NCBI GenBank assembly: GCA_965240325.2
Contig: OZ251236.1
Coordinates: 1,612,001 to 1,676,000, forward strand
DNA length: 64,000 nt
From: Rebecca billardiae RCC1528
Taxonomy: Eukaryota > Protista > Haptophyta
Direction: 5' to 3'
Made by a program: the position numbers and the translations under genes. Numbering within the stretch: the stretch's first letter is position 1; each line of letters starts with the position of its first letter. Positions 2,024-47,125 of the stretch are shown here, piece by piece. The notes beneath the pieces were generated by a model. That model had not been told where the DNA came from and did not search any database. It saw only the letters and a program-made list of their open reading frames with translations.

Positions 2024-2388
2024 GCTTGGATAAACCCAACGGGATTCTCATACCGGCCCAACGGGATTCTCATGGCCTTTGGGCGCCTTATTTTTGGTAG
2101 TAACGACATGGGTATGGTTTTGATAATTTGTGTAGTGTATAATTCTGTTGATTGGCGCAGCTCCATAACTCCATAAGTAATTCGACAAGGTCGGCTATTA
2201 ATTCCTCGATCAATCAAGGGATGATTATGATAATGTCGTCCTCGACTCCTCGCCGACGACGAGTCGCCGTCGTCGTCGTCGTCGCCTGGTGTACCATACC
2301 ATACCCTCGTGGACCCAGGTGGACCCGCATATCTATCATCCTTGAGTGTATTTCTGGCACCACCCCTACCCCTCACGAACGCTCCAAG

Positions 2389-2449
2389 TACAGTTTTACT
2401 AAGAATAAGAGACGCACACACCTCAGGTCTGCAGGCGAGTACGACGCGC
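2389..2449 (+). mobile_element. Short TA|CAGTTTACT family-A element (solo arm)
   Basis: Degenerate match to TACAGTTTACTAAGAATAAGAGACGCACACAGCTCAGGCAGGCGAGAT, which also occurs at 29957, 33246, 34551, 34747 and 47013. Confidence 0.75.
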
Positions 2450-2559
2450 TGGTCATGCTCCTCCAACAACACCTTGGTGCTCGGGCCGCGGCGCGCATTG
2501 GGCGCGCCTTGCCGGGCGTGTCGGGTGCCGACGCGCTCGCACGTCGCCTCCGCCGCCGC

Positions 2560-17500: not shown

Positions 17501-19917
17501 CTCTCGCCTCCATCTCGCCCGAGGGCAGCTTCGCACAGCGGCAGCCGCCCCAGCTCTCGCCGCGGCGCGGCAGCGACGGCGCCGCTAGCCGCGGCGGCGC
17601 GGAGGCGCTCGGCTTTGCCGACAGGCTCGAGGCGCGGCTCGACGACCTCGACGACCTGGTGGACGAGACGAAGCGGCGCGCGGCGCTCACGATGCAGAAG
17701 TACGCGCGCGGGCGCAAGGCGCGCGCCCTTGTCGACGAGGCCTCGCCCCAGTTCCGCGAGCGCAAGGCGCGCGCCTCGGACCGCACGCGCGACCACTCGC
17801 TGACCAAGCTCGTGCGGCTCGTGGGCGAGAGGCTGAGCACAGACCACTCGCTGCTCGGCATCTGGTTCGCCGACCCGGAGGACGCGAAGCGCGCCGAGCT
17901 GGCGCAGATCTTCTGGAACATCGCGATGCTCGGCCTCGTGATCACGTGCATGCTCTACGACGCGAGCGGCGGGCCTCCGGACGCGTCGGCGGCGCCGAGC
18001 GTCTCGCTGCTGAGCGCGGTGCTCACGGCGCTTCTCACCGCGGCCCTCTCGTTCCCCGCGCTCGCGCTCTTCCGGCTGCTCTTCCGCTGGGGGTACGGCC
18101 GGCGCTCGGCGCCGCTCTCGAAGCGCGTGTTCGCCACGTTCCTCCGCGCCGAGCTCGCGCAGCGCGAGCGCGAGCGCGCGCCCTTCTCCACCGCCGTCAA
18201 GACGAGCGTGCGCACCGGCGCGTACCTGCGGCCCGCGCTGCCGCGCACCAACTCGGACCGGCGCGGCGACGGCGGCGCGCTGCGCGCCGCCGCGCCCGCC
18301 GACCTCGAGCTCGCGCGCGAGTTCGCGCGGCGCGCGTCGATCGAGGCGGAGCGCTCCTCCATGCCGAGCATGCCCGGGCTCGCGCCGGTCACGCTGCCCG
18401 GCATGCCCGGCCGCTCGTCGCCGCGCGCCAAGCCGCGGCCGCCGCCGCCGCCGGGCATGATGGTGCGCCGGCCGGGCGGGCCCCGCGCCACCGGCCAGCT
18501 GCCGCCGAGCATGGCAGCGTCGATGGCGGCGACGGCGGCGGTGGCGGCGGCGGCGGGCGCTTCGGAGGGCGAGCGCACCGACGCGCCCGCCGCGGCCACG
18601 GCCGCCAAGCCGGGCAGCCTCTTCGCGCCGCGGGCGGTGGCCGTGCCGAGTGCCGACGCGTTCAAGCAGGCGCGAGTCACGCCCGTGCCCACCGCGGGCG
18701 CGCTCGACCCCGGCTCGTTCGGCCGGCACAGGAAGTCGGACGAGGACGAGTTCGAGGCGAGCGGCAGCTTCAACCAAGCGTCGTCCGAGCGCGCATCCCG
18801 GCGCGCGGTCGCCGCGTCGCTCAGCGTCTCGCTCCGGGGCACGAGCGCGCACGCGGAGGCGGAGCGCGTGGCCGCGGCCGAGCCGCCGTCCGCGCTCGGC
18901 CTCGTGCGCGACTTTGCCGACGTGGCGTCGAACCGTCACGGCCGCTCGCCGCACCCCGGCTCGCCGCCGCTGAGGCGCGATGACGCGCCGCTCACGCCCA
19001 GCGGCCTCGCGGGTCAGCGCCGCCCGCACTCGCGCCCCTCCTCGGCATCGTGCGCCGCCATCTCCGCCGCGTCCACCCCGCGTGCGAGCGCAGCAGACGG
19101 CGAGGAGGCGGGTGCGACCGAGGAGGCGGAGGCGGCGATGCGCACGAGCATTAGCGAGGTGCTGCCCACGCCCCCGCCCAGCCCGCCGCCGCCGGGCGGT
19201 CCGGCGTTCTCGTTCAAGACGGGGCAGGTCCCCGCGCCCACCGACCTGCCGCCCGCCGCCGCGCCCGCCGCCGCTGCTGCGGAGGAGGAGGCGGAGGGCG
19301 GCGGTCTGGACGAGCAGACGGTCGCGCTGCTCAAGCTCAAGTTCGAGGCGTTCGACGCGGACGACAACGGCTCGGTGGACGGCACCGAGTTCGGCGCGCT
19401 GCTCGAGTCGCTCGGCTTCCGGCTGCGCCCGCGCCGCGTCAAGCAGCTCGCGTCGGAGCTGGACACCAACGGCAACGGGCTGATCGGCTTCGACGAGCTG
19501 TGCGACTGGTACGAGAAGATGGTCGCGGACGAGGCCGCAAAGGAGGCGCGCCGCGCGGCGGGCTGGCCAGGCCGCGTGCGCCGCGTGCTGCGCAGGCTGA
19601 CGCCGCCGCCACTCGTCAAGCTCGTGCTCGCGTGGCTGGCGATGTGGGCCATCTTCGTCGTGCTCGCGCTGCTCGCGGTCGCGTACGCGCTCACGTTTGG
19701 CGCGCAGCAGACGCGCTGGCTCCTCTTCAGCTGGACGTTCGCCGAGGTGCAGACGCTCGGGCTGGAGGAGCCGGTCATCATCGCGATCACCGTGCTCGCG
19801 CCCATCCTCTTCGACCGGCTGCTCTCGCAGGGCGGCGCGACGGGCGAGGCGATCAACGAGCTGCTCGCGACGACCGTCGGGACGGCCGTCACCGCGATGC
19901 ACAACCTCTGCGGCTGA
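2560..19917 (+). CDS. Giant (5785 aa) intronless polycystin-1-like surface protein: signal peptide, 6 FG-GAP repeats, SPPP stalk, SEA-like module, IPT/TIG, REJ, GPS/GAIN, about 5 TM, IQ motif, 2 EF-hands
   Basis: Signal peptide MRVPQPVLLAAVLLAALPATRA at ATG 2560, in frame with ORF 2152. Six GD(V/L)(D/N)GDG repeats (~2680-3870). IPT-like PPGGPVGGGTAVTLVGSGF and SPASGDANGGTEVTIGGAGF. REJ-like INRPPYGGGLEVAPASG..LPLSYAF. GPS CVWWD..W..DGC..CACTHLTDF (~16860-16985). IQ AALTMQKYARGRKAR. EF-hands ~19340-19520. Confidence 0.9.
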   Translation: MRVPQPVLLAAVLLAALPATRAQTSPPPSPPPSPPPSPTAVVLGQTKISATQGGLAQALQDRDEFGTAVASLGDVDGDGVPDAFVGAPWDAINANIGGAGYVLLMNAEGTVKAETRIAEQEGGFTESFSGQAHFIGGSAAGLGDLDGDGVPDMLMAQGDKAGSTIWTLFLNTDGTVKSYVKIAPGEGDLADLGTDKFGNTVAVLGDVDGDGVVDALVGAGRRDTQSAFVLFLRTDGSAKGYQEISEAAGGLAASPFVNGTWGNAVCAAGDVNGDGIPDAAVGDEKYEDGGLKYGALYVLMLHRNGTVKAEAFISKDELSLLAAGHKLGSACEGLGDLDGDGVPDLAVGAKEAGSGEQGGVFILNLNSDGSVKASAEISQGVGGLSASGLDELDQFGSGLGFLGDLDGDGSPELMVGAPWDDDGFDKAGAVYVLTLATPPSSPKPPPSPPPSSPPPSPPPSPPPSPPPPSPPPSPPPSPPPPKAPPSPPPSPPPTPPPSPPPSPPPSPSPPKPPPSPPPSPPPSPPPSPPPSPPPSPPPLPPPSPPPSPPPPKPPPSPPPSPPPSPPPSPPPSPPPSPSPPKPPPSPPPSPPPTPPPSPPPSPPPNPSPPSPPPSPPPSPPPSPPPSPPPSPPPSPPPPSPPPSPPPSPPPSPPPSPPPSPPPSPPPSPPPSPPPSPPPPSPPPSPPPSPPPSPPPSPPPPSPPPSPPPSPPPSPPPSPPPPTPPPSPPPTPPPSPPPSPPPPSPPPSPPPAPPPSPPPSPPPPSPPPSPPPSPPPSPPPSPPPSPPPSPPPSPPPSPPPPSPPPSPPPSPPPSPPPSPPPPSLPPSPPPSPPPSPPPSPPPPSPPPSPPPSPPPSPPPSPPPPSPPPSPPPSPPPSPPPSPPPPSPPPSPPPSPPPSPPPSPPPSPPPSPPPSPPPSPPPSPPPSPPPSPPPSPPPSPPPSPPPSPPPSPPPPSPPPSPPPSPPPSPPPSPPPPSPPPSPPPSPPPSPPPSPPPPTPPPSPPPTPPPSPPPSPPPPSPPPSPPPAPPPSPPPSPPPPSPPPSPPPSPPPSPPPSPPPSPPPSPPPSPPPSPPPPSPPPSPPPSPPPSPPPSPPPPSLPPSPPPSPPPSPPPSPPPPSPPPSPPPSPPPSPPPSPPPPSPPPIPPPSPPPSPPPSPPPPSPPPSPPPSPPPSPPPSPPPSPPPSPPPSPPPSPPPSPPPSPPPSPPPSPPPSPPPSPPPSPPPSPPPPSPPPSPPPSPPPSPPPSPPPPSPPPSPPPSPPPSPPPSPPPPTPPPSPPPTPPPSPPPSPPPPSPPPSPPPAPPPSPPPSPPPPLPPPSPPPSPPPSPPPSPPPSPPPSPPPSPPPSPPPPSPPPSPPPSPPPSPPPSPPPPSLPPSPPPSPPPSPPPSPPPPSPPPSPPPSPPPSPPPSPPPPSPPPSPPPSPPPSPPPSPPPPSPPPSPPPSPPPSPPPSPPPSPPPSPPPSPPPSPPPPSPPPSPPPSPPPSPPPSPPPPSPPPSPPPSPPPSPPPSPPPPTPPPSPPPTPPPSPPPSPPPPSPPPSPPPAPPPSPPPSPPPPSPPPSPPPSPPPSPPPSPPPSPPPSPPPSPPPSPPPPSPPPSPPPSPPPSPPPSPPPPSPPPSPPPRPPPSPPPSPPPPSPPPSPPPSQPPSPPPSPPPPSPPPSPPPSPPPSPPPSPPPPSPPPSPPPSPPPSPPPSPPPSPPPSPPPSPPPSPPPSPPPSPPPSPPPSPPPSPPPSPPPSPPPSPPPPSSPPSPPPSPPPSPPPSPPPPSPPPSPPPSPPPSPPPSPPPPTPPPSPPPTPPPFPPPSPPPPSPPPSPPPAPPPSPPPSPPPPLPPPSPPPSPPPSPPPSPPPSPPPSPPPSPPPSPPPPSPPPSPPPSPPPSPPPSPPPPSPPPSPPPSPPPSPPPSPPPPSPPPSPPPSPPPSPPPSPPPPSPPPSPPPSPPPSPPPSPPPPSPPPSPPPSPPPSPPPSPPPPSPPPSPPPSPPPSPPPSPPPPSSPPSPPPSPPPTPPPSPPPPSPPPSPPPTPPPSPPPSPPPPSPPPSPPPSPPPSPPPSPPPPSPPPSPPPTPPPSPPPSPPPPSPPPSPPPSPPPSPPPSPPPPSPPPSPPPSPPPSPPPSPPPPSPPPSPPPSPPPSPPPSPPPPSSPPSPPPSPPPTPPPSPPPPSPPPSPPPTPPPSPPPSPPPPSPPPSPPPSPPPSPPPSPPPPSPPPSPPPTPPPSPPPSPPPPSPPPSPPPSPPPSPPPSPPPPSPPPSPPPSPPPSPPPSPPPPSPPPSPPPSPPPSPPPSPPPPSPPPSPPPSPPPSPPPSPPPPSPPPSPPPSPPPSPPPSPPPPSPPPSPPPSPPPSPPPSPPPPSPPPSPPPTPPPSPPPSPPPPSPPPIPPPSPPPAPPPSPPPPSPPPSPPPSPPPSPPPSPPPPSPPPSPPPAPPPSPPPPSPPPSPPPSPPPSPPPSPPPPSPPPSPPPSPPPNPPPSPPPSPPPSPPPAPPPSPPPPSPPPSPPPSPPPSPPPSPPPPSPPPSPPPSPPPVPPPSPPPPSPPPSPPPISPPSPPPSPPPPSPPPSPPPASPPAPPPSPPPPSPPPTPPPSPPPSPPPSPPPPGAPPSPPPSPPPLHPPAPPPSPPPSPPPSPPPQPPPPLPPPIPPPSPPPNPPPSPPPPSPPPAPPPAPPPQPPPSPPPPGLPPSPPPSPPPAPPPRPPPPSPPPNPPPSPPPSPPPNPPPPSPPPSPPPSPPPTPPPPGPPPSPPPAPPPQAPPPPPPTPPPSPPPSPPPSPPPLPPPPSPPRPPPFVPPPLPPSASPPPSAPPPSAPPSPPPLSPPPSPPGSSSYLGLTLDAEPSAYGTQAAQRALADGLASAAAIPAEWVGVVSVSAASVRVVLRVFQPSDPAAPDAAAALQALSAEGLGASLGVGVLVTPEPLVAGCSEPGAANYEPGVEVDDGSCVAHSPPPPASPPSAPPSPPPASPPPSPPPSPPPSPPPPSPPPLLPPPPRVAPFPPPSPPSPPPAPPPSPPPSPPPGAPPAPPPSAPPSAPPSEPPSAPPPAPPPSSPPQPPPRPPPRPPPPSPPPALPPPPRAEPFPPPAPPSPPPRPPPPRPPPSPPPSPPPLPPPPPPGTPPASPPSPPPPPPPHAPPLLPPSPPPSPPPMPPLPSLPPSPPPRPPPPSAPPSPPPPPRTEPFPPPAPPSPPPSPPPSPPPPSPPPSPPPSPPPSPPSPPPLPPPRDPPSAPPSAPPTPPPSPSPRPPPGAPPSSPPMPPPNLPPHAPPPHPPPSPPPGTPPPMPPPSPPPTPPPPSPPPSLPPPPRTEPFPPPAPPSPPPNPPPSPPPQSPPPSPSPPSSPSPPSPPPPPPPTTPPSEPPTTPPAPPPTPPPPPPPPAPPPRPPPVPPTPPPPPRTEPFPPPAPPSPPPSPPPSPPPSSPPPPPPSPPPSPPPGPPPHPPPSSPPPLPPPSPPPPPPPAIRVSVLGGSREGAPLGSDDAALELEGAGFDSLAGGAFGEIQCAFTRADGGGDGGGPLLSGATVLSDARLRCAMPAAASSGAPSAAGAYTVGLALGAVGASTDVDVSGLFGPVSFELYDMAAVSVLELRPPGGPVGGGTAVTLVGSGFAEYGEGQLCCVLGGGGCAAAATLLPPSAAAPTLSRARCVLPPPLGGAAGSVALELSLGGGSADSTTASALPFLAYDPPTLGSVSPASGDANGGTEVTIGGAGFDALAGGALLAVRFGDAPAQPPARVTAGEVVVSTRYGAAGRAQLRVSLNGQQFTPAAAATPPPAGALAFTFVGLHAPVLEGVAFNGAATLMVLRFDAQPTDRAGMGSGMGECSRVLDDDTVALVGGGAAAAAAAPPQCYWTDDSTLVARLSSATLVRAGSEVGVRAGALRPEQCGTPCAAALASAAARAAIDADAPCGEGVPCPTPVAAVSGPAVLSACPGASLALDGSASSRGGIGPAAFEWRVDPSRSARAASLNARLSALPARTPQLSLGGPGAASPTELGVSGSFVFVLRVTSFLGVPSAPAEWPVSRGDGASPILAIDGAPELRARASEPTLLSGRAELAPCWPPSFEPAMVFSWALEGAAQVGGGANASSSASAGELAAATDVLLARLASARTAVLQLPPHSLAAGWAYDLALTARMAAAPAQASTARVRVRVARQPLRAVIAGGDRRVPSSLRLAVDASASFDPDAPTADGGDGGMPPLSFAWSVANASSLEPVALEPSAANASGALFELAPGTLPPGVYALTVRVSAPGRAPAAASVTVEAVPGAVPTLGFEPLGRRKWPAVFDRNPERLTINARLDAASRALEAAGQARFSYEWSARRVGAAGALEPAGLDLADSERVTTTGAALRTVAIRSGALAPGATYAFRLAVLGGAQPAYTEVRVTINRPPYGGGLEVAPASGVALQTSFALYAAGWAEDDEEDLPLSYAFSHAPLGTDAVAAVAALGAASASASASALLPAGNRTLTVRVADALGGAAHAHAAVAVAPPGEGAGLLDSVLTRAYAAVATGAAETATQLVSALADALDATPAGGDNATVASATLAQLLELTAGAAEASAPTAEARAASASALAAVLEAAPPGAFDASAQTAGLEQVAALASQSAASGVDGPTAAALLRAADAALSADTDADAPLSAAEAEAVGGAATSAVGALAIALLAGAVSGEAPFEAVGKAINVSATRADAGALGNITLPGPGGAGSVGVPASVFGGVPLELLEGGVDVVLWSSARNVHGDPSTQANGTAVASGLVTPVFSVTLYSASAGLALTISDLPDEGRVLIEVPGLEGAGGAGEWGCVWWDEGASAWLDDGCETVVARADDGSLARYCACTHLTDFAGVAVPTDADAARTEVVEFNINTLSLDDAAAAVGVGSGPVLARNPYIFWLVVAMSAGCGLSVALFGARDLRDHARRKERIRRLLASEAGPAGGLPASPASPAKPSLFQRRAAKLQAEEDALFGGSPWRPAPADAPAAVGTHSRPASSSVPGPRLVAPADGGDAGGSVARAPAPLASISPEGSFAQRQPPQLSPRRGSDGAASRGGAEALGFADRLEARLDDLDDLVDETKRRAALTMQKYARGRKARALVDEASPQFRERKARASDRTRDHSLTKLVRLVGERLSTDHSLLGIWFADPEDAKRAELAQIFWNIAMLGLVITCMLYDASGGPPDASAAPSVSLLSAVLTALLTAALSFPALALFRLLFRWGYGRRSAPLSKRVFATFLRAELAQRERERAPFSTAVKTSVRTGAYLRPALPRTNSDRRGDGGALRAAAPADLELAREFARRASIEAERSSMPSMPGLAPVTLPGMPGRSSPRAKPRPPPPPGMMVRRPGGPRATGQLPPSMAASMAATAAVAAAAGASEGERTDAPAAATAAKPGSLFAPRAVAVPSADAFKQARVTPVPTAGALDPGSFGRHRKSDEDEFEASGSFNQASSERASRRAVAASLSVSLRGTSAHAEAERVAAAEPPSALGLVRDFADVASNRHGRSPHPGSPPLRRDDAPLTPSGLAGQRRPHSRPSSASCAAISAASTPRASAADGEEAGATEEAEAAMRTSISEVLPTPPPSPPPPGGPAFSFKTGQVPAPTDLPPAAAPAAAAAEEEAEGGGLDEQTVALLKLKFEAFDADDNGSVDGTEFGALLESLGFRLRPRRVKQLASELDTNGNGLIGFDELCDWYEKMVADEAAKEARRAAGWPGRVRRVLRRLTPPPLVKLVLAWLAMWAIFVVLALLAVAYALTFGAQQTRWLLFSWTFAEVQTLGLEEPVIIAITVLAPILFDRLLSQGGATGEAINELLATTVGTAVTAMHNLCG
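3870..12880 (+). repeat. Coding SPPP/SPPPP tandem repeat with higher-order 822-bp units
   Basis: Marker CCTGCCCCTCCG recurs at 4807, 5629, 6451, 7177 and 7999 (spacings 822, 822, 726, 822). A 441-bp duplication occurs at ~8530/8971. A non-repeat island lies at ~11000-11350. Confidence 0.95.
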
Positions 19918-28055: not shown

Positions 28056-29891
28056 TCACGGGCTATAGGTATGCCCGATGAAGATATCGGGGGTGAAGGT
28101 GGCGCCACGCAGCCCAAGCTGAGAGTACACGTACTGCATGTACGCTCCTTGCAGCAGCACAAGTGCCTCGTAGGACACGACGACCACCTCGGCCGGAGCA
28201 GCCAGGCGTGCGAGCGCGTGGGCGAGCAGCTCCTTCGCGTGATCCATCTCGAGCTGCGCCGTCTCCGGGTCGTCGCAGTGCGGCTTCCTCGCGGGCTCGG
28301 AGCTGTTTGCTCCCACGCGCCGCAGCTTGCCACTCATCGCTGCGCCCTCGTCGCGCATCACGAGCACAGCCGTCACGTTTGCTCCGGGCCACCGCGCCTG
28401 CAACACTCGCACGTGCGACGTGACGTTCACAAACATGCGACTGAGCGACGGCAGGCTGCCGTCCGGCTCTGCGCGCAGCGCGTCGATTGTTGGCGCGAGC
28501 ACACGGGCGCCCCGCCGACAAGCCCCTCTCCAAGGGAGAGAGATGTGCTGCACGAGCGTGCGCCCATCAGAAACCATCGCTTGCCCATCCCACTCGTCGA
28601 AGCCCACCACGCCGGCCGCCTGCGCGAGCGTGCGCGCGACGAGCTTGGTGCCACTGCTCTCAGAGCCGAAGACCGAGAAGACTCGAACGGGCTCGAGCTC
28701 GGCCCGCTGGCGCTTGAAAGGCTGCACCACCCACACCAGCTTCCAGAAGGCGTGCCCTGCGAGCGTGCCGGACGTGCCCCGAATCCACGCCCAATCGTCC
28801 TGTGGCTTCGTGCTGGCACCGGCGGGCGGCCGTGCTGCCCGCAGCGGCGGCCGGGTGGCATATTGGCGCAGGCCGCGAGCGCTTGACGCGCGCGCCTGCG
28901 GCGCCTGCCCGCAGTCAAAGAGTGGCGCGTCGACCACATGAATCGCATACGCGGTGAGGTTGCGCGGCAGGTTCTCCTCCGCGCCTGCGCCCTCCAGCCC
29001 CATCCCGTGCTGATGGCGCCGTGAGTGCACCGCCAGCGACGGCAATCGGCCCACGGTGACGAGCGCGAGGCATTGCACGCCGCGGCGCGCGAGGTGGAAG
29101 GTGTGCGCTGTCTCGCTGTGGAACGGCTTTGGGTCGGGATCAGGGTGCCGCCACGGGCACGCGTCCAGCCCGTCGTACCCGCAGCCGCACTCCGTCTCGT
29201 GCCTCCAGTGCCGGGGTCCGTCCCAGCCTGAATCCGCGCAGCCCTTGCGCGGGCGCGCGCGCTGCTCGTAGCTGGCCACATCCCCCGGGGGCAGCACATG
29301 GCGCCAGCTCCTGGCGGCGCCGATCCCTGGGCAGCTGTCCGCTGACAGCGGCCAGCCCAAGTACACGCCGCACGTCTCCGCGAACATGTCCCCGTACGCG
29401 GCGCGGAAGCTGTCGGCTCGGGCTGCGAATGCGCGATCGGACCACGCGAGCACGACCGCCGTGTCGGGCGTGCGATGGCCGAGCCAGAGCGCGAGCTGCT
29501 CAGGCCGCGGCGGCGGCGACTGCAGGTCCACGCGCCAGCGTACGACGAAGTCAAACACATCGAGTGCAAAGTGGCGCAGCGCCAGGTCGAGGAAGAACCA
29601 CTGCAGCGCACTCGTTGGACACGCCGCGAGCACGCCGCTCTGTAGAGCGGTAGGCGCGACGAGCACGACCCGCTCGCGGCGTTGAGCCAGCTTTTGCGCG
29701 ACGAACACTTCGGCCGCGTACGTGGCGACGTGCGGGTTCATGCCCTCGAGCGCCGCACGCGCCTGAGTCAGGTGCTCCTCGGATGCGATCTGTAGCGAGC
29801 CAGTGAGGAGCGTGGCGACAGAGAGGGACGGCTGCGCGGTGCTGCCCAGCGCGCAAGCGAGCGCCAGCACGAGACATGCAGTGGAGCACAT
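28056..29891 (-). CDS. Secretory-pathway protein: N-terminal glycosyltransferase-like domain plus C-terminal sulfotransferase domain
   Basis: Signal peptide MCSTACLVLALACALG (ATG 29891). GT-like motifs LLTGSLQ..QW..FDFVVRWRVDL..WSDRAF. 5'-PSB-like VFGSESSGTKLV, LVMRD and VSYEAL. Confidence 0.7.
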   Translation of the reverse strand: MCSTACLVLALACALGSTAQPSLSVATLLTGSLQIASEEHLTQARAALEGMNPHVATYAAEVFVAQKLAQRRERVVLVAPTALQSGVLAACPTSALQWFFLDLALRHFALDVFDFVVRWRVDLQSPPPRPEQLALWLGHRTPDTAVVLAWSDRAFAARADSFRAAYGDMFAETCGVYLGWPLSADSCPGIGAARSWRHVLPPGDVASYEQRARPRKGCADSGWDGPRHWRHETECGCGYDGLDACPWRHPDPDPKPFHSETAHTFHLARRGVQCLALVTVGRLPSLAVHSRRHQHGMGLEGAGAEENLPRNLTAYAIHVVDAPLFDCGQAPQARASSARGLRQYATRPPLRAARPPAGASTKPQDDWAWIRGTSGTLAGHAFWKLVWVVQPFKRQRAELEPVRVFSVFGSESSGTKLVARTLAQAAGVVGFDEWDGQAMVSDGRTLVQHISLPWRGACRRGARVLAPTIDALRAEPDGSLPSLSRMFVNVTSHVRVLQARWPGANVTAVLVMRDEGAAMSGKLRRVGANSSEPARKPHCDDPETAQLEMDHAKELLAHALARLAAPAEVVVVSYEALVLLQGAYMQYVYSQLGLRGATFTPDIFIGHTYSP

Positions 29892-29958
29892 TGGTGGGCT
29901 CGGGCAAGCGCGCCGGGCGGGGCCGGCGGGACGGCCATGCGCCGCTGGACGACTGCTA

Positions 29959-30069
29959 CAGTTTACTAAGAATAAGAGACGCACGACACAGCTAACCCGA
30001 CTGTCAATCTCGCCTGCCTGAGCTGTACATGTGCGTCGCTTATTCTTATTATATAAAATTAGTAAACTG
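29959..30069. mobile_element. Two-armed (hairpin) copy of the family-A short element
   Basis: Partial forward arm at 29959-29993 and inverted arm at 30003-30069; TA at both ends. Confidence 0.75.
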
Positions 30070-30461: not shown

Positions 30462-33154
30462 CTATGCGCCGCCGTCGAGGTAGCGCTTGCACACGTACCG
30501 CGCCTCCCAGTCGTGGCACGGGTGGTCGACCCAGGTGCCCGTCTGCACGACCGCGCAGTCGATGTGCGGGTAGCCCACGAAGACGCGGTTGTCCGGGTGG
30601 CCGCGCCGCCAGCGGCGGTACGCGCTGCCCTTGAGCCGCGCGTCCGCCCACTCCCACCCGCCCGCGGGCTCCTCCGCGCCCGGGCTCTGGAACAGCCCGA
30701 TCAGGACCTGGCCCACGAAGAAGCCAGCGAGGCACTCGTGCAGCTTGTGCTCGGCCTCGTCGCCGATCGAGGAGAGGAACGCGCCGTCGTGCGCGGCGCA
30801 CGCCGCGGCGGCGTCGCCCGCGACGAGCGGCGGCCCGCGCGCCGCCGTGTTGTCGCCGAGCAGCGCGTACGCCGCGCGCCCGCCGCGGCCCTCGTACACG
30901 TGCCAGCCGCGCTCGTCGCGCGGCAGCGCGTCGAGGAAGCGCGCGCACGCGCGGCACGCGCGCTGGCCGCGCGCGGTGAGGCCGAGGCACGCCGCGACGA
31001 GCAGCACGCTCCACAGGGCGTACGCGGCGCACATCGCGCGCAGCCGGCGCGTGCGGGGCGCGCCCAGCTTGGACGCACCCGCCGCCGCGTGCCGCGGCGG
31101 ATGCGCCTCCTCGATGGCCGGGACGACGCGAGCGCGCCGCGGCGCCGCGGCGGACGGCGGGGGCGGGGGCGCGCCGCGCCACGTGAAGGGCACGTGGACG
31201 ACGGCATGCGCCGGCTCGAGCCCGGCGGTCACGTCGTCGGAGTCGACGGCCGGCGGCGACGGCGGCGGCACCGCCCGCGGAGGCACCTGCGGCGGCGGGC
31301 GCGGCGCCGCCGCCTCCGCGCCCGCCGACGCGACCCCGTGAGGGGTGCCGCCGCTGGCGGCGCGCTCGAGCCCGCCCTCGGGCGCGCCGCCGGCGAGCTC
31401 GGCAGTGGCGGCGCCCAGCGCGGTGCTCGCCACGCGGCGCAGCGTGCCGCGGATCGCCTCGTTGAACGCCGCGCGGTCCGAGTGGCCCGCGGTCACCTCG
31501 ACGCACGACAGCAGCCACTGCCGGTCGAGCTCCCAGAAGCACGACGTCTGCGCCACGTCGAACGCGTCGAGCGAGTCCGGGGAGAATCCGGGCAGGAGGC
31601 AGCCGTCGATGCGCCGCGCGCCGCCGCCGACGTACTCGTGCGTGACCAGCTCGACCACGCACCACAGCCGCTGCGCGAAGGTGGGGCCCAGCAGCATCAG
31701 CAGCCGCTCGCAGCCGGCAATGTACACGGGCAGACACAGGATGTCCTCGGCCGACGCGTTGCTGTTGTCGTCCGCGGGCAGCAGGCAGTGCCGGTCGATC
31801 CAGAGGGTGGGCTCGCGGCCGTTCTCGGCGAAGAATCGGTCGCGCCACGCCTGCAGCTGCGCCCACTTGTGCGCCGGGGGGTCCTGCGTCGAGTGGGTCA
31901 CAAAGGCTGACAGCGGCGGCGGCGGCGGCGGGCGGGGCGAGGGCGGCGCGGCGCGGTGGCGCGGTGCGCTTGTCAGCGTGCTTGTCAGCCCGGCGGCGCA
32001 CAGCCCCAGCCCCCGCGCGCGCAGCGGGCAGCGCGTAAGCGAGCCCTCCGCCTGCCAGTGGGGCCTCGCGCGCGCCGCGCGCGCGCGCGCGCACCATCGA
32101 TCCCGCCGAGCTCCGCCGGGATCGTGCGCGCGTACATCGCGCGCTCCGCGTCCGCGTCGGCCGCGCTGAACACCGTCGGCTCGAGCTGGTCGAAGCGCAC
32201 GGCGCGGAAGCGGCGCGTCGCGTCGCGCACGAGCTCGTCGACCTCGCAGCCGCCCATCAGCGTGCCGATCCCCGCGGCGGCGGCGACGGCGGGGCTGCGC
32301 GAGACCAGGCAGCCGAGCACGCGCTCGCGCACGCGAGGCACGAGGCACGCCGTCCCCACGACGATCAGCGCGCCGATCCGCACGAGCCACAGCTGGCCCA
32401 TCTCCTCGGCCACGGGGAAGGAGGGCCAGACGAGGTGGAGCATGATCACGTTGAAGGACTGGTTCAGCGCGAGCGCGAGGTAGGTCGCGCCGATCCCGTC
32501 CCACAGCCGCTCGAGCAGCCCGCGCATCGTCACGCGCTGCGCCGCCGCCGCCGCGTCGCCGCCGCCGCGCGGCCCGGAGGCGTGCGCGCCGGCGAGCCCC
32601 GCGAGCAGGTAGACGCCGAGCGCGCACCACACAGCGATGGGCGTGAGCCCGAGGGCGAGGAGGAACATAGTGTACACGCCGCCGCACGTCTGCGCCTGCA
32701 CCGCGCCGAAGCGCTGCAGCCCGCGGCTCAGCTGGCGGGCGCTCGCGATTAGCGGACCGGCGACGGCGATCGTGACGATGACGACGGCGATGGTCACGCG
32801 GTCGGACGGGCGCATGCCGAGGAAGAATATGGGCAGTCCGACGCTGGCGAAGGTGGCGCTGGCGTGGGTGAACAGCGTGTCCTCCACGCGCCCCACGCTC
32901 CACCAGTACCCGATCTGGAACGTGCCCGTCGCGAGCATCAGCGAGCCGATCGCGAACGGAGGGACGGACGTGCGCAGGCGGTAGCGCCGCCCCGCGCGCT
33001 TCGCCTCGAGGAGCTTGCCGCGCAAGAAGTCGAGCTGCGCGGGGCGCGACAAAGCCACCGCGAGAGCGTCGTCCGCAACCGGCGACGAGGGCATCATCGT
33101 GTGGTGGTGGGGCCCCCCTGGTGGTCTCGTACGACGACTGATACTCCTACTCAT
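30462..33154 (-). CDS. About 6-TM protein with TIR/HET-like domain, extra TM and C-terminal C-type lectin domain; exons 33154 (or 33097)-32095 and 31906-30462
   Basis: A GT-AG intron (32094-31907) joins GGID|AFVTHSTQD. Then KW..L..W..F...GREPTLWID..C, CLPVYIAGCERLLMLLG and RLWCVVE. TM YALWSVLLVAACLGL. CTLD AAAAC..LSSI....E..IGL..WEW..W..GHPDN..DC..WVDHPC..YVC. Confidence 0.82.
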
Positions 33155-33245
33155 TCTATGATTCGGAACGACACAGGTAGGACGGCGCAGGTCTCCTGAC
33201 GTACTGTGCCATTTTAAAACTTATTTGCATCGATTCTCTGAGTTC

Positions 33246-33294
33246 TACAGTTTACTATGAATAAGAGACGCACACAGCTCAGGCAGGCGAGATT
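33246..33294 (+). mobile_element. Family-A short element (solo arm)
   Basis: One mismatch to the family-A consensus. Confidence 0.8.
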
Positions 33295-33312
33295 ATGGTA
33301 TCCATAATAAAC

Positions 33313-33441
33313 CAACGTTGAGAATCATTCGTCACCGGTTGTCGCGGGAACTGATTCGAAACTCGAAGTGGTATATTGTGAGTCAACGTTGAGAATCATT
33401 CGTCACCGGTTGTCGCGGGAACTGATTCGAAACTCGAAGTG
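33313..33441 (+). repeat. Perfect 58-bp direct repeat, 2 copies, 13-bp spacer
   Basis: CAACGTTGAGAATC...CTCGAAGTG at 33313-33370 and 33384-33441. Confidence 0.95.
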
Positions 33442-34550
33442 AGTACTTCGCCATCAATTCGCCATCAGTCGCGGATAATACCCCCATAACTCTGATATGA
33501 ATAACCCGAGAGAACAATCAGGAAAACTTCCAGACTGCTTCGCAGTTCGCACTGGCGGGCGCGCGTCCAAGCCCGTCGCAGGGGTGCCCGTCGCAGGTCT
33601 GTATGCTCATGCAGATAGTTCTGACGCCCCTGCTCACCACCCACCTGTCCACCGGGGCACATATCTTATGCTCAAAACCGCACGCGGCCTCGCGACGTGC
33701 TGCGCCAGCGAGCGACGCGGTTGGCGCGCCCCGCGGCGCGGCGGCGTCAGACGCCACGCGCGAGGCTGGCGGCACCACCCGCGTGCGCGCGGACGCGCCG
33801 GCTCGGGCGACGCGCGCCGCCTCAGCTCGAGCACGAGCGCGAGCGCGCGGCGCCGGCTCGGTAGTCTGTGGCGGCGGAGTGCTCGAGCTACACTGCGCGC
33901 GGCGCCGAGCGGCTTGCGTGCGGTGCCAGCGGAGGAGCACTTGTCGATCAGAGGGTGAGACTGTCGTAGTCGATGTCGCCGCCCGCCGACCTAGCGGCGA
34001 GCACGGAGCAGCTGCGGGAGGTGCCAGTGTGAGACAGCCAGCGGCTGTCGCCCCTCACGGGCCCGTGCTGTGGGCGCCCGCGTGGGGCGCCTGCGGATGA
34101 GGATGACGGGTCGTAGTAGTGCGTCGCCGCGTGCCGGCCAAGCGGCGCGCCGCGCGCAGCTGCAGAAGAGGGGCTTGGACAGTGTCAGCGCGCCGCCTAG
34201 TGCGCTCTACTGGGCGATGAAGCGTCAGATGAGGTTAGTAGTCGACGTCGCAGCCCGGCGCGCCGGCAGGCTGCTGCAGATCAGCAGTGCTTCGGATGCT
34301 GGGGAACCTGCGGCCCCTGTGCTCGTCCTATTACTCCCGCACCGCCATATGCCCCGTTCTAGCTAGGGTGGAGCAATAAGGGGCACGGAGGAGGCCAGCG
34401 CCAAGGGCCAGATAGGTGCAACGGCGTCCCGACCTGCTGCAACGCCCCCAATGAGGCGATGCTATAAGCCTGCGGCGCGGCTGGCTGGACGCGGACTAAC
34501 TGAAAGAGGGTGCCCGAGTGCCTACTTCCCGGACCCGCTGCGTGTACTTG

Positions 34551-34598
34551 TACAGTTTACTAAGAATAAGAGACGCACACAGCTCAGGCAGGCGAGAT
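34551..34598 (+). mobile_element. Family-A short element (solo arm)
   Basis: Exact consensus match. Confidence 0.8.
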
Positions 34599-34746
34599 AG
34601 AGCTGTTGATCTCCACATGCACCGCTAGAAGAATGCGGGAAGAATATCAGCTGCTGCTAGTATTATAATAATTAGCTGGCAGGTGCCAATATTTCAGTGA
34701 TGATATGGCTGAAACTCAATTAATACTAACACCGTTGGAGGGCCTG

Positions 34747-34799
34747 TACAGTTTACTAAGAATAAGAGACGCGCACAGCTCAGGCAGGCGAGATTGACG
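34747..34799 (+). mobile_element. Family-A short element (solo arm)
   Basis: One mismatch to consensus. Confidence 0.8.
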
Positions 34800-36357
34800 G
34801 CCCGCACCCACGCGGAAGTGTACTTCTGCGCATCGGTGAGCGGCCGCCGCCATGCGCGGCGATGCCGATGTAATGTCGCGGCATGCGCGCCGGACGCGGC
34901 CGGCCTGGCCGCGGTCCGGCCGTCGCAGCACTCGCTGGTGACGCTGCACGCAGGCCATCTAATGGCGGCGCTGCCTACCAGGACTGACTCATGTAAATCA
35001 TCTGCCTTTTTTAGTATCGGGCTGGGCTGTAGGCCCGCCCCTGTTGCCTGACTCGGATTCTATCATGAGTGTCCGTTTGACGACACGAAGTGACACAAAG
35101 TCGGCGTTGGAATGGCAGAGCACTGGTAACGGCTCCGCCTGCACCGGAATCGAAACAGGTTGAATAGCTCTGAGGGCGACTTAGGCTGCCCGGGATAAAA
35201 GAACCGTAACATTTAACAAATATTAGTTAAACTATGCAAATAATTAACTGAACTTCGGCACTGAATCGCTGCTGTCACTCACGCTGCCACGGGCCGGGCT
35301 GTCGGTAGCTCCTACTCCAAGTGGTCCGGAAGGCTTTGTCCGTTTGCGGCTACAAGTATCTCCCTTGCTTTGTCGCAGCCTCGCAGGTCCAGTACTCCGA
35401 TAGTACAGCCGCCGTACTATCGGAGAGTACTGGAACGGCGCTGCATGTCGCGCGCGCACCGAACCGCAACCGACCGGTCGAGCACATGACAGAGTTGACA
35501 CCGAGATTCCCGAGACCGCCGGTTTTCGCCCGATTCGCAATTGCCCACCTCGTCCGGTCGCGCGTGCAGGTCGAACGTACTGTGACGTAGGTCGTAGCCG
35601 ACTGATAACACATTAACGCTGATTTCTGTGAACCGTGTGACCGATCAGGGCGGAGGTACGGGCCGCCGTCAGCACCGACAAGTTTCGGTGCTGATGTGAC
35701 TTGGGTGGTCCTCGTCAGCCTTGCACGACGAGCGCTCACACTGGCCACCACACCACGCGCTGCACACGACCGTGGCCTCGCGCGAACCCCTGGCGCGCGC
35801 ACAGCCCACGCGTGAAGCCGCGTGAAGCGATGAGTGTCAGTGTGCGATGGCGGGGAGCAACACGGAAGTTGCGAAGAGAAAGGACCGCCATCATCAAATA
35901 CCTATGATCCTTTGGTTGCGAACCGACATCAGCAGGCTGATGTGGTTAGCCCCGGGACTGGAGGACGGCCTGATGAATCATCATCAGTTAAAATTCCCCA
36001 CCCAACCTCACCACTGACCGAGACACCAAGTGCCTTGTTTGGGAGTATTAATTACGCGCCTACTGATATTGGTCCGGGCGTGACGGCGGGGGTTTCATAT
36101 GACGAAGTTTCCTCAGTTTGATGCTCATTTTCAGTTTTCACACCCTTTTCAGGGTTCTTGTCGGCAGTTATGAATACGCCGCCGGTTGGCGGGCAGCACG
36201 GAGCTCGAACGCCAAACTGAAATAAACGATCCGCATCAATCGGCGCGCACGGTGCGAATCGTCCACGCAGCTGCGCACGAGCCACGACTCCCCCACGCTC
36301 ACGAGCGCAGTCGCCTGGCGCCGGCGGGGTGGCGCGCACGCCTGAGCCGGCCGTGGC

Positions 36358-39300
36358 ATGCGGCGCGCCGGCCGCGCGCTCGTGGGCCGCTCTGTGCTGC
36401 CATGCCTCGCCCTCTTCATCGGCGCGCACTGCGCTCGCGCCGCCTTCGTCTTGACCGACGGCCCGCCGCAGCTGCGCGGCCTCGAGCTGGTGGCGGCGCA
36501 GCAGGCGTTCTCGCCCGACGTCTTCGACGTGGCCGGTCCCGTCGTGCTCACGCGGCGCGAGGAGTGGTCGTACGCGCAGGGGTGTCCGCCCGCCTTCGTT
36601 GGCAACAGCTCCCTCGCGGGCGCGATCGTGCTGCACCTCGACCCCAACTGGGCGCGGTGCAGCCACGAGCAGCACGCGCGCGCGGCGGGTGCGCGCGGCG
36701 CCGTCCTGTGGCTCGACTTCCCGCTCTCGTTCTCGGAGCACTTCCACATGGTGCCGGGGATGACGCGCAACTTCTGGGCAGACGGCGACACCCGCGAGCT
36801 CGCGGCGCCGCCCGCGCTCCACTTTGCGCAGGTGGACGCGCTGGCGCTGGTCGAGGCGCTGCAGCTGCAGCGCCGCGCCGCGCGCGACGGCCGCTCGTCC
36901 GGCGGCGCCATCCGCGCGCGGGTCTCGCACACGGCGGGCGAGCGCAGCGCGTGGGAGCGGCTATGGGGCTCCCCGTGGTTCACGCTGCTGCGCGCCCTCC
37001 TCGCCCTCCAGTCCCTCGCGTGCATCGAGCTGGCGCTCTGCCGGCTGCACGCGTACTGGCGGTCGGACGAGCGGAGGCTGCAGCTGAGCGCGGCCAACGC
37101 CGTGCTGCTGGCCGAGCTGCTGTGCAACGCGGTGGGCGTGGCGAAGGTGGTGCTCGACCCGCTCCAGTCGACGGGCCTGCTGCCGGTGCGCATCTCGCTG
37201 CTCATCCCCGCCTTCGCCATGCCGACCCTCGCCATCGCCACCATCTTCTTCTTCGGTGCGCGAGCGCGCGCGCGCGACCGCGCAGGCCGCGACACACTGC
37301 GCGCGCGCGCCGCGCTGCGCGCGCGCGCCGTGCGGGCACGGCCGTCGGCAGCGAGCGCGCGCGGCGCGGGAGCAGCGTGGCGGGCCGGCCACCCCGCGAC
37401 CTCGGCGCCTGCGCCCGCGCACCCCACGCCCGCCGCGCCGCCGCTCGCACAGCGTACTTTGAGGCGGCGATTCGGTCTGGCGGGCTCGCGCCCGGCCGCA
37501 TCACGCAGGTGGCGCACTCGCGCGTCGTGCTCGTCGCCATCGCCCTGGTGCTGCTGTGCACGGCGGCGGCCGTGACGGTCGCGCTCACCGTCTCGATCAA
37601 CATCATGACCAAGCTCCTCGTGCTCGCGGTGATCCCCTTCGCGCTGGCGTGCGCGATGGCCAAGCTCAGCGCCCATCTCCTCGCGCGCACGCGCGCTCGG
37701 CTCGGGGGCGTGCTGCCTCCGCCCGTGCTGCGCCGCGTGCTCCGCATCCTGCGCGCGACGACCGTCGGGAGCGTGTGCCTCGCGCTGGGCTGGGGCAACG
37801 CGTACATGCAGTACGGCCCGACGCGCGCCGCCCTGCAGCTCGCGTGGACCAGCGCGGCCTTCGGCGCCGTCTCCTACGCGCAGATCGAGGCGTTCAGCCC
37901 GGTGGGCGTGCGCGTGCTGCGGCTGCCGCTGCGGCGCGCGACCGAGGCGGCGGCGCGGCTGGGCGCGCGCGCGCTCGGCGCTGCGCGCCTGCTGCGCCGG
38001 CGCGATGGGCACGGGGCGAAGGTGAGCCCGGCCGGGCGTGAGCCGTCGGACACCGAGCTCTACGCCCAGCTCAGCGCGAACGCCGCGCGCTCCCCGTCGG
38101 GCGCGGCGGCTCCCTCTCCGCCCGGCGGCTGCGGCGTGCGCGCGCACTCGGCCGGCGTGGTCGCGGACAAGGCGGTCGGCGCGCACGCCGCGATGGGCGC
38201 GGCCGCCGGCGCGGGGCTCGAGGCAGCCGCGGAGCCCGCGGCGGGCGGCGGCGCGGAGAAGCCCGCGGAGGGCGTGCCGCACGTCGACGAGGACATCGAT
38301 GCGGTCGTGCCGTGGCGGGGCGAGCCCGGCGGCTGCGCCCCTGCCGACGACGCGGCCGCAGAGGCGGCGGTCGTGCCGCTGCGGCAGCGCACCCTCGTGC
38401 TGCCCTCGCCGGCAGATCGCGAGCTCGACGCGCGCGCACGGGGGCGGCCCGAGTGCCGCCAGCCGCCCGCCGAGCTGCCGCGCTCGAGCGAGGGCAGCGA
38501 CGACCGCTCGCCCGACGAGCCGCCGCCCGCCTCCGCGCGCACGGCTTGGTGCCGCGTGAGCGCTCCGTTCGGCAGCGCGGGCGGCAGCCGGCTGGGCCAG
38601 CAGCTGCGCAACCGGCTGGCCGTCGGGCTGGGCGGCGCGGCAGCGCAGCCGGCGCAGCCCGCGCCGAGCCCCGTCGAGCTGCGCCGGCTGCTCGGCCTCT
38701 CGTACTTTGCGCTGCGCGAGTTTGCGGCAACGCACGCGCTGGGCGGCGGCACGAGCAGCGCGGAGGTGGGCCAGCTGGTGCGCGCGCTCACGCTGGGCTC
38801 GGGCCTCTCGTACGCGGAGCAGTCGATCGGCGAGACGACGGCGGGGAAGCCGCGCCGCGCGGCGGTGCGCCGCGCCAACGTCTTCGTCTCGCACGCCCAG
38901 CAGTGCTCGTTTGCCAAGCTGCTCGACGCGCTCGAGGCGCACGCGGCGCGGCACGAGCTCGAGCTGGGCGCCATGTACTGCTGGATGGACGGTGCGCAGC
39001 AGCGCGGCGGGCGCAGCACGCCGCGCGCCGCACCGCGCGTGTGCCCGCGCCGCCCCGTCGCGATCATCCACCGCGGCGCACACACTCACGCACACACGCA
39101 CGCACACACGCGCGCACACACCGCCCCTGCCTCTGTGCCGTGCCCCACGCGCGCGCTGCCCCACGCGCGGCGCTGCCCCGCGCGGCGCTGCCCGCCAGTC
39201 TTCTCGATCCGCCAGCACGACGTCTCCGCAGACGTGCGGTACATCGGCGAGATCGTGCGCGAGATCGGCACGCTCGTGATGGTGCTCGACCCGTGGGACA

Positions 39301-40784
39301 GGCCGCTGGCGCTCACGCGCGCGTGGTGCCTCTTCGAGCTGCACCAGTGCGTGAAGGCGAGGGCGCACGCGGCGGAGGCGGCGCACGGCGCGCAGCCCGC
39401 GCAGGCGGACGGCGCGGCCGCGGCGACGTGCGTGGGGGACTCGCCCCCCACGCCGCCGGCGTGGATGCGGCGGCGCGGCGGCGCGGCGGCGGCGGGGGCC
39501 GGCGGCGGCACCGGCACCGCCGGCACCGGCACCGCCGGCGGCGACAGCGGCCGCGGCGGGCTCGCCGCCACCCTCGTCGGCAGCGCCGCCAAGGCGCGCG
39601 TCAGCAGCAGCAGCACCGCACCCGCCGGCAGCTGCAGCTCGAGCAGCTTCGGCGCCGGAGGGCGGGCCGGCGCCACGCCGCCGGCGGCGGCGGGCGGCGG
39701 CAGCGCCACGCCCGCCGCCGCGGCCACCGCGGACGCCGGCGGCGTGGCGCTGCACCTCACGCTCGCCCCGGCCGAGGCGTCCGCACTCGTGCGCGCCCTG
39801 CGCCGCGACCGCGCGGCGGCCGAGGCTGCGCTCGTCTCCTTCGACGCTCGGAACGCGGAGGCGTCGGTCGAGGCGGACCGGTGGATGATCTTCGAGGCGA
39901 TCGAGAAGGAGCACCTCGCGCACACCGACGGCTCCGCCGCCTCGTTCGGCGGCGGCGAGAGCGCGCGGCGCCGCCGGCTGCAGGCCGCCAAGCGCGCCCG
40001 CCGCCCGTCATGCTCGCCCCTGGGCGGCGCCGCGCGCGCCGTGCCGATGGAGGAGGCGGTCGACGCCTTCAACGCGACCGTCGCCGCGGAGGTGCGGCGC
40101 GCGCTCACGGCGTTCACGTGGGCGGTGCAGCACGCGAGCGGCGCGGGCAGCAACAGCGGCTCGGGCGGGTGGGACGCGCACGCCGCGCGGCTGCGAGGCC
40201 GCTTGACCCGCCCGTCCGGCGGCTCCGCCTCCGAGGCGACCGACGGCGGCGGCTCGGTCGAGAACGGCGGCGCCGGGGGCGGGGGCGCCGTCTGGTCGAT
40301 CGGCGGCGGCGGCGCCAGCTCCTCCTCGCTCACGAGCCCGGCGCGCTCGCCGTACTGCTCGGGCTGGCGCGGCCCGGCGGCGCTCAGCCCCGGCGTGGGC
40401 GAGCGCCGCCTCAGCCCGAGCTCGAGCACCCACCGGCTGCCCATGGCGATGGCGAGGGCGCGGCTCAGCACGTCGCCGCTAGAGCTGGCGCCGCCGGTGC
40501 GTCGGGGCGCGTCGGACGCCGCCCGTCCGGGCCTGCAACGCCCCCGCTCCACCACCGCGCACGACGTCGGCGCTGGCTCGGCCCACGGCGTTCGACGCTC
40601 CAGGCAGGCAGCGGGGCTGGCAGCGCTCCCCCGGCGGAGCCAGAGCACGTCGCGCTCGCTGGCAGGGACGCCCGAGCGAACCACCCGCCGCCTCTCGAGC
40701 ATCACGGACAGCAGGGCGAGCTTGTCGTTGGCGAGAGACTCGGCTGGGGGAGACCCGGCGGGCCATGTGGAGCCCTTGGACTGA
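36358..40784 (+). CDS. Signal peptide, PA-like domain, about 7 TM and cytoplasmic TIR/HET-like domain; exons 36358-37255, 37453-38991, 39199-40784
   Basis: Intron 37256-37452 joins IFFF|AYFE. Intron 38992-39198 is in frame and joins YCWMD|VFSIRQH. PA-like LAGAIVL..CS.E..AR.AGARGAVL. TIR-like ANVFVSHA..F..LLDAL and LVMVLDPW..PLALTRAWCLFEL..AEAS..DR..IF. Confidence 0.8.
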
Positions 40785-47012: not shown

Positions 47013-47064
47013 TACAGTTTACTAAGAATAAGAGACGCACACAGCTCAGGCAGGCGAGATTGAC
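47013..47064 (+). mobile_element. Family-A short element (solo arm)
   Basis: Exact consensus, 16 bp from the GT47 ATG. Confidence 0.8.
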
Positions 47065-47125
47065 GCCCGCCAACTGTCACCGCCCATGAAGCCGTCGCCG
47101 ATGGTAGCGCCGCCGGAAAAATTCG

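Follow-up and report, generated by a model that had tools for sequence, protein, structure and literature searches.

Two divergently transcribed genes, termed gene A and gene B, lie at positions 30,462 to 40,784 of a 64,000-nucleotide stretch of the haptophyte Rebecca billardiae RCC1528 (contig OZ251236.1, positions 1,612,001 to 1,676,000 of the forward strand; hereafter the window). Each encodes a multi-pass membrane protein carrying a domain of TIR fold that also resembles the fungal HET domain, and the two domains belong to different subfamilies. The analysis supports a receptor-like topology, with an ectodomain outside the cell and the TIR-like domain inside. We consider it probable that A and B are two separate, self-contained one-chain receptors that signal through their TIR-like domains and are neighbours without forming a functional unit. 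TIR-fold domains drive signalling in immunity and cell death across bacteria, plants and animals; to our knowledge, little has been established about the means by which microalgae detect viruses and other threats. In the papers searched we found no description of multi-pass TIR/HET-like receptors with lectin-fold or PA-like ectodomains, and the designs of genes A and B appear to be undescribed variants of TIR-fold receptors.

Both genes carry a TIR-fold domain with an invariant glutamate

The gene A domain (31416..31906, minus strand; AFVTHS ... LWID ... RLWCVVEL ... FNEAIRGTLRRV) was modelled with AlphaFold2 (AF2) at a predicted local distance difference test score (pLDDT) of 91.1, and the Foldseek top 50 for this model consisted entirely of TIR domains (50/50, probability up to 0.99). 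VIA returned the TIR domain of SARM1 at Z 9.1, RUN1/RPV1 at 8.9 and RPP1 at 8.7, together with MyD88 and IL-18R at Z 7.6-8.2. In the ESM Atlas, the neighbours of the domain were haptophyte hypothetical proteins (TM 0.85), H-NOX fusions and TPR fusions of oomycetes; clusters of bacterial TIR_2/ThsB proteins came next (TM 0.55-0.62). Compared with the PDB, the family profile matched TIR domains only (SNC1, SIGIRR, TLR, AT1G72930; E 0.05-1.3), and its RlWCvvEl motif was aligned to STWCLNEL of SNC1, a helix whose Glu is catalytic in plant TIR domains (see also PMC9153377). A TIR fold of the gene A domain is thereby supported at the level of predicted structure and profile alignment.

A profile built from the gene A domain and two homologues identified 3,540 representatives of 50%-identity clusters at E<=1e-3, so that the similarity of the gene A domain to this family is far beyond chance. 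Among 72 aligned members, residues F2, H5, S6, D9, K14, W36, D38, R80, W82, C83 and E86 are invariant (72/72). The conserved Glu, located in the helix after strand C, is E86 of this alignment and lies within RAWCLFEL in gene B. Pfam HET was matched by 44/72 members, in each case weakly (best E 1e-4), TIR_2, likewise weakly, by 38/72 (best E 1.9e-6) and TIR by 5/72; one member, P0002, matched HET at E 0.0097 with 16.7 bits, the cut-off being 22.5.

The gene B domain was assessed from its separate exons and from a contiguous homologue, P0151, of the haptophyte Diacronema lutheri. A tblastn search with the gene A domain gave no match in gene B at E<=1, whereas hhalign aligned the A-type profile to the B-type homologue from strand A to the Glu helix (91.7%, E 8e-7). 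Homology to the A-type profile thus indirectly supports a TIR fold for the gene B domain as well. The initial annotation had proposed that both domains share the TIR/HET fold with a conserved Glu and that they represent different subfamilies rather than a recent duplicate. The AF2, Foldseek, VIA and profile matches bear out the first proposal, and the combination of a silent tblastn search with a confident profile alignment agrees with the second.

Structure of gene A, the lectin-type gene

The window has a GC content of ~0.6-0.85, and its genes contain GT-AG introns with the recurring donor G|GTGCGC, features that mark it as eukaryotic. Gene A lies on the minus strand, with its ATG at 33154. 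Its exon 1 (32095..33154) is an open reading frame (ORF) that encodes a cytosolic N-terminus, six membrane helices at about residues 60-87, 93-112, 119-155, 159-192, 210-242 and 248-271, and three short helices, ending in ...ELGGID. The AF2 model of this exon reached a pLDDT of 85.3, and the N-terminal bundle is 25-35% identical to the bundles of many family members (blastp). Foldseek gave no match to the six-helix bundle below E 0.3, and VIA-wide returned generic helical bundles only (Z<=10.6), with no specific PDB fold.

The intron (31907..32094, minus strand), read from the sequence, comprises 188 nt in phase 1 with GT-AG borders (G|GTGCGC...CAG). Its removal yields GID-AFVTHS, at which point homologues are continuous (DIDAFLSHSW / HCDAFLSHSW), and the intron occupies the same position in the relative L005, which is 77% identical. 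Exon 2 (30465-31906, minus strand) is a single open frame comprising the TIR/HET-like domain, a Pro-rich linker (31035-31415, minus strand), a seventh membrane helix (MCAAYALWSVLLVAACLGL; 30978..31034, minus strand; hydropathy score 2.1) and a C-type-lectin-fold domain that extends, with the stop codon at 30462-30464, over 30462..30920 (minus strand).

The lectin domain matched the PDB in phmmer searches, with E 4.7e-4 to the lectin domain of CL-P1 and 1.8e-3 to collectin-11; we class it as C-type-lectin-like on this sequence match, which includes W-x-W and the Cys framework. It is also 35% identical to the C-terminal lectin domain of the family member P0035, and Pfam, including Lectin_C, gave no match at E<=1. 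P0006 and P0035 both show the seventh-helix layout and place the TIR-like domain, the helix and the lectin domain in this order, P0035 on an intron-free, transcript-like contig; because of this recurrence, the gene A architecture is a real design and not an artefact of adjoining ORFs. The contigs of P0006/L005 and P0035 are under 2 kb in length. P0006/L005 shares 66% protein and 77% DNA identity with gene A, and a comparison of gene A with L005 gave a dN/dS of about 0.5 for the domain and 0.8 for the membrane exon, with dS unreliable under extreme GC3 bias. Such fast divergence would fit a rapidly evolving receptor family, codon bias making the estimate itself unreliable.

Structure of gene B, the PA-type gene

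Gene B lies on the plus strand, with its ATG at 36358. Exon 1 (36358..37255) encodes a signal peptide, a weak PA-like ectodomain and membrane helices 1-3 as judged by hydropathy, and is collinear with residues 9-315 of P0151. The PA-like domain matched Pfam PF02225 at E 0.037 with 14.6 bits, under the cut-off of 23.9; for P0151 the PA match was E 0.001 with 19.6 bits. The contrast drawn in the initial annotation between a C-type lectin ectodomain in one gene and a PA ectodomain in the other is therefore upheld for the lectin fold (PDB E 4.7e-4), while the PA label is weak.

Intron 1 (37256..37452, plus strand; 197 nt, G|GTGCGC...CACAG) is inferred. Its acceptor at 37452 is the only one that restores the frame, leaving a loop of 22 residues versus 23 in P0151. 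An acceptor at 37508 was rejected, as it breaks the frame, whereas 37452 fits both the frame and P0151. Exon 2 (37453..38991, plus strand) carries helices 4-7 and continues through a long cytosolic linker of low complexity into the first part of the TIR/HET-like domain, in which NVFVSHAQ...CWMD starts at 38877 (phmmer with the P0151 domain, E 3.8e-10).

Intron 2 (38992..39198, plus strand; 207 nt, G|GTGCGC...CCAG) is in frame and stop-free and contains tandem repeats. The resulting exon 2/3 junction corresponds exactly to P0151 residues 693|694, where an intron is present in three D. lutheri paralogues. Exon 3 (39199..40784, plus strand) comprises the rest of the TIR/HET-like core, a low-complexity insert, the C-terminal half of the domain, a tail and the stop codon (40782-40784). 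The core (VFSIRQHD...RAWCLFEL) reaches about 39360 and is followed by an insert of ~130 residues; the C-terminal half (LHLTL...FDARNAEASVEADR...AFNATV) lies at about 39744-40100, with a Ser/Gly/Ala-rich tail after it. This exon is collinear with P0151 residues 694-1057 and matched the P0151 domain in phmmer at E 5e-19 and 1e-5. Additional in-frame introns may be present within its low-complexity parts.

Overall, gene B thus presents seven hydrophobic helices by hydropathy, followed by NVFVSHAQ...CWMD|VFSIRQHD...RAWCLFEL. The initial annotation had described two divergent genes with starts about 3.2 kb apart, each with a membrane bundle followed by a domain of the form F(V)-S/T-H ... W-x-D ... 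R-x-W-C-x-x-E, and both descriptions are confirmed. Its further statement that an intron splits this signature in both genes holds for gene B only. In gene A, by contrast, the intron lies just before AFVTHS (GID|AFVTHS...LWIDRHC...RLWCVVEL), and the whole signature is in one open frame and so is not hidden. A language-model look-up of the B-type seven-helix core returned GPR137, THH1/TOM1 and PRRT3 as weak leads, with a score of 0.77 that is under the useful range.

A large family of membrane proteins with variable ectodomains

Most of the 3,540 representatives have 450-600 residues and an N-terminal membrane bundle, and the family is a very large, mostly protist and haptophyte-rich set of membrane proteins with a cytosolic TIR/HET-like domain. 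It wires this domain directly to multi-pass receptors with lectin-fold or PA-like ectodomains. P0174 and P0138 instead begin with the lectin domain, after which come a helix, the six-helix bundle and the TIR-like domain, and P0151 and P0152 share the PA, seven-helix, TIR-like design of gene B. The P0174/P0138 cluster is Emiliania huxleyi-like; the CCMP1516 annotation contains only a 233-aa fragment of this type, named a C-type lectin domain protein, and this reference gene model looks truncated. Another member, P0003 (1110 aa, from a low-GC organism), carries two tandem copies of the unit of six-helix bundle and TIR-like domain.

The closest named relatives of gene B are from D. lutheri, where the B-type homologues are named 'Heterokaryon incompatibility domain' proteins in UniRef; genes A and B themselves were not among the annotated D. 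lutheri proteins. Two further proteins of the window were matched only in short Logan contigs, so that the source is Pavlovales-like yet distinct from the annotated D. lutheri assembly. At the D. lutheri locus L001 (JAGTXO010000001.1, 2242163-2265899), three near-identical PA, seven-helix, TIR/HET-like genes of 1076, 1065 and 1078 aa stand in a row, the last two head-to-head and about 0.6 kb apart. This cluster shows that members of the family have recently been duplicated locally, in inverted or tandem fashion.

Proposed mechanism

In the proposed model, gene A would place its C-type-lectin-fold domain outside the cell, the seventh helix joining it to the TIR-like domain that lies inside, after the six-helix bundle; in gene B, seven helices would connect a PA-like domain outside with a TIR-like domain inside. 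We infer that a bound ligand, or some change registered by the membrane bundle, may gather the cytosolic TIR-like domains. The invariant Glu of the R-x-W-C-x-x-E helix could then cleave NAD+ or make a nucleotide signal, in the manner of SARM1 and of the TIR enzymes of plants and bacteria; another possibility is that the gathered domains recruit partners. Should the domains prove to be active NADases, the family would amount to a receptor-enzyme signalling system of marine phytoplankton that is both major and simple.

The chief mechanistic alternative, which we regard as rather unlikely, is a non-enzymatic adaptor or death-fold role, in which the domains serve as interaction or oligomerisation modules, like the TIR domains of TLR/MyD88 or as proposed for HET. 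Pfam similarity to HET is as common in the family as that to TIR_2, we found no enzymatic activity of HET in the papers searched, the TIR domains of MyD88 and IL-18R are among the structural matches, and the loop after strand B is altered in gene A, all of which would suit such a role. Conversely, the Glu is invariant throughout the alignment and sits in a W-C-x-x-E helix aligned to the catalytic Glu of plant TIR domains, and it is the enzymatic TIR domains of SARM1, RUN1 and RPP1 that rank highest among the structural matches.

Genes A and B as neighbours

The start codons of the two genes are separated by a spacer of 3,203 bp (33155..36357), in which GC falls to 0.42-0.60. A ~52-nt repeat occurs in it three times, and a 58-nt repeat is present in two exact copies. 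The ~52-nt repeat (TACAGTTTACTAAGAATAAGAGACGCACACAGCTCAGGCAGGCGAGATTGA; plus strand) has sharp boundaries and occurs five times in the window (29958-30010, 33247-33296, 34549-34601, 34745-34797 and 47014-47065), where none would be expected by chance. Copies are positioned 17-140 nt upstream of the ATG of three minus-strand genes (sulfotransferase-like, gene A and exostosin-like) in the same orientation, and no copy in matching orientation precedes gene B. Because of these placements, gene A shares an upstream element with unrelated neighbours and not with B. The repeat may act as a core promoter or as a leader element, or may be what remains of a spliced leader. The 58-nt direct repeats (33313-33370 and 33384-33441) stand 71 nt apart within the low-GC stretch close upstream of gene A. 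The ORFs of the spacer gave no Pfam match, the spacer gave no Rfam family, and no regulatory element shared by A and B was found within it.

We then considered whether the two genes act together. The locus resembles the plant pair RPS4/RRS1 in that the genes are divergent and both encode a TIR-fold domain, and the RPS4/RRS1 TIR heterodimer (4c6t) was among the fold matches. On this basis A and B might form a functional sensor/helper pair, co-regulated from a shared upstream region, with A as a modified sensor or regulator and B as the executor; we judge this to be very unlikely. Besides the divergent orientation, such a pair would be consistent with the different subfamilies of the domains, which are not simply a recent tandem duplicate, and with the divergence of the gene A domain at two near-invariant positions, common to its relative P0006. 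Several findings nevertheless speak against it. The repeat-bearing spacer is far longer than the ~0.6 kb of the head-to-head D. lutheri genes, and the ~52-nt element of gene A and of two unrelated minus-strand genes is absent, in matching orientation, before B. In D. lutheri, the closest B homologues are flanked by near-identical B-type copies and unrelated genes, with no A-type gene. At nine A-type loci of other organisms, comprising L002 and L003 with 10-kb flanks and seven metagenome contigs of 4-11 kb, no second member adjoined in a scan with A-type and B-type probes, by which other TIR genes would be missed. Furthermore, unlike RPS4/RRS1, A and B lack NB-ARC and LRR, and the Glu is kept in both, unlike in RRS1.

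Conserved A-B linkage was therefore not found in the closest loci, a weak test given that none of them is truly orthologous. Synteny via the sulfotransferase-like neighbour (28059-29891) was uninformative, the search returning only that gene itself in a Logan contig. The initial annotation had envisaged a co-regulated NADase pair like RPS4/RRS1 and had named synteny in relatives as a check; with no conserved linkage at the loci compared, a 3.2-kb repeat-bearing spacer and no shared element, the pair is unsupported, and the single-member A-type loci and the D. lutheri B cluster give the same answer. The slimmest probability goes to a membrane-level TIR pair of sensor and executor, in which the lectin-fold A, its TIR-like domain having lost two near-invariant residues around the loop after strand B, would regulate, or be guarded by, the seven-helix B with its canonical TIR/HET-like domain, as a cell-surface parallel of paired plant TIR-NLRs.

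The adjacency could also be a relic of an old inverted local duplication with a later swap of membrane and ectodomain modules, so that the link would be historical and not functional. Local duplication is directly seen in the three B-type genes in a row in D. lutheri, two of them head-to-head, and domain shuffling occurs in the family, the lectin domain being N-terminal in P0174/P0138 and C-terminal in gene A/P0035. Yet the A and B domains are too distant for tblastn, the intron positions of the two genes differ, and so do the membrane bundles, with six helices versus seven; we consider this origin unlikely. Two independent receptors that happen to be neighbours thus remain the reading we prefer, and with the paired module unsupported, the locus adds two more members to the family and not a new principle.

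Some observations weigh against this reading. Neither window domain matches Pfam TIR, TIR_2, ThsB_TIR or HET (PF06985) at E<=1. Gene A is the sole member of the 72 that lacks both the Trp of SHSW and the Gln of C-x-D-Q (LWIDRHCLLP...), a Gln present in 69/72 members and kept in gene B (WMD|VFSIRQ), and its loop after strand B is lengthened by a 5-residue insertion. To judge from these substitutions, the gene A domain may be catalytically or assembly-impaired; P0006 has the same Trp, Gln and loop changes, and gene A keeps the Glu and the other invariant residues. The gene A lectin domain is likewise without the canonical Ca2+/sugar-binding residues. Sugar-binding C-type lectins carry QPD/EPN and WND; in gene A, HPD is aligned to the QPD of CL-P1 and WVD to its WND, and because of these replacements canonical sugar binding by this domain is doubtful. 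Finally, the comparison loci behind the argument for chance adjacency are few and short, and the scan for second members was limited to the A-type and B-type probes.

Comparison with known systems

The family resembles enzymatic TIR domains (human SARM1; RUN1, RPP1, L6 and SNC1 of plants; bacterial ThsB, AbTir and SPARTA TIR-APAZ) in fold, with Z 7.5-9.1 over 105-128 aligned residues, and it shares with plant TIR domains the invariant Glu in the W-C-x-x-E helix, aligned to W-C-L-x-E-L. It differs from them in an identity of only 10-18%, in its motifs D-A-F-x-S-H-S-W and L-W-I-D-K-x-C-x-D-Q, in extra C-terminal helices, and in its fusion to multi-pass membrane bundles instead of NB-ARC/LRR, SAM/ARM or Argonaute partners.

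The HET domain is characterized by the motif blocks ALSYxWG, WIDxLCIxQ and RxWxxQE, which the family blocks AFxSHSW, WIDKxCIDQ and RLWCxxE resemble. By contrast with fungal HET (PF06985), however, the Pfam matches are weak, the window domains match none and gene A lacks the Gln; moreover, the fungal domain is N-terminal to NACHT/WD40 or free-standing, whereas here the domain is C-terminal to a membrane receptor. HET is a cell-death and incompatibility domain remotely homologous to TIR, and HET-like domains have been reported outside fungi, including in Haptophyceae (Dyrka et al., PMC4986451).

Like Toll-like and IL-1 receptors, the encoded proteins combine a putative ligand-binding ectodomain, a membrane span and a cytosolic TIR-fold domain. 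They depart from these single-pass receptors in crossing the membrane several times (6+1 or 7 helices) and in having a lectin-fold or PA-like ectodomain in place of LRR or Ig; the order in gene A is moreover inverted, the TIR-like domain preceding the last helix and the ectodomain standing at the C-terminus.

A parallel in a haptophyte is provided by the TIR proteins of Gephyrocapsa huxleyi, which have N-terminal membrane helices and a conserved Glu, are induced early in virus (EhV) infection, and have been proposed as receptors, the genes being defined by Pfam TIR models (PMC12489294, 2025). As in genes A and B, an N-terminal extracellular region or several membrane helices precede a TIR domain with the Glu, whereas lectin or PA architectures and gene pairs were not described for the G. 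huxleyi proteins (PMC12489294). In the light of this induction, a defence role for the present family is plausible.

Other features of the window

Upstream of the locus, a giant plus-strand open frame spans window positions 2152-19914, with a GC content of 0.85 and a strong GC skew. Downstream, two adjacent plus-strand ORFs (52471-53199 and 53227-53994) contain a near-identical segment (DFSGVWELSESKLFDEYLTAMGANW...KQTWSK..GTWQFNVQTPIGPKTEKFPIG). The pair looks like a tandem duplicate of a small gene, possibly of the lipocalin or fatty-acid-binding type.

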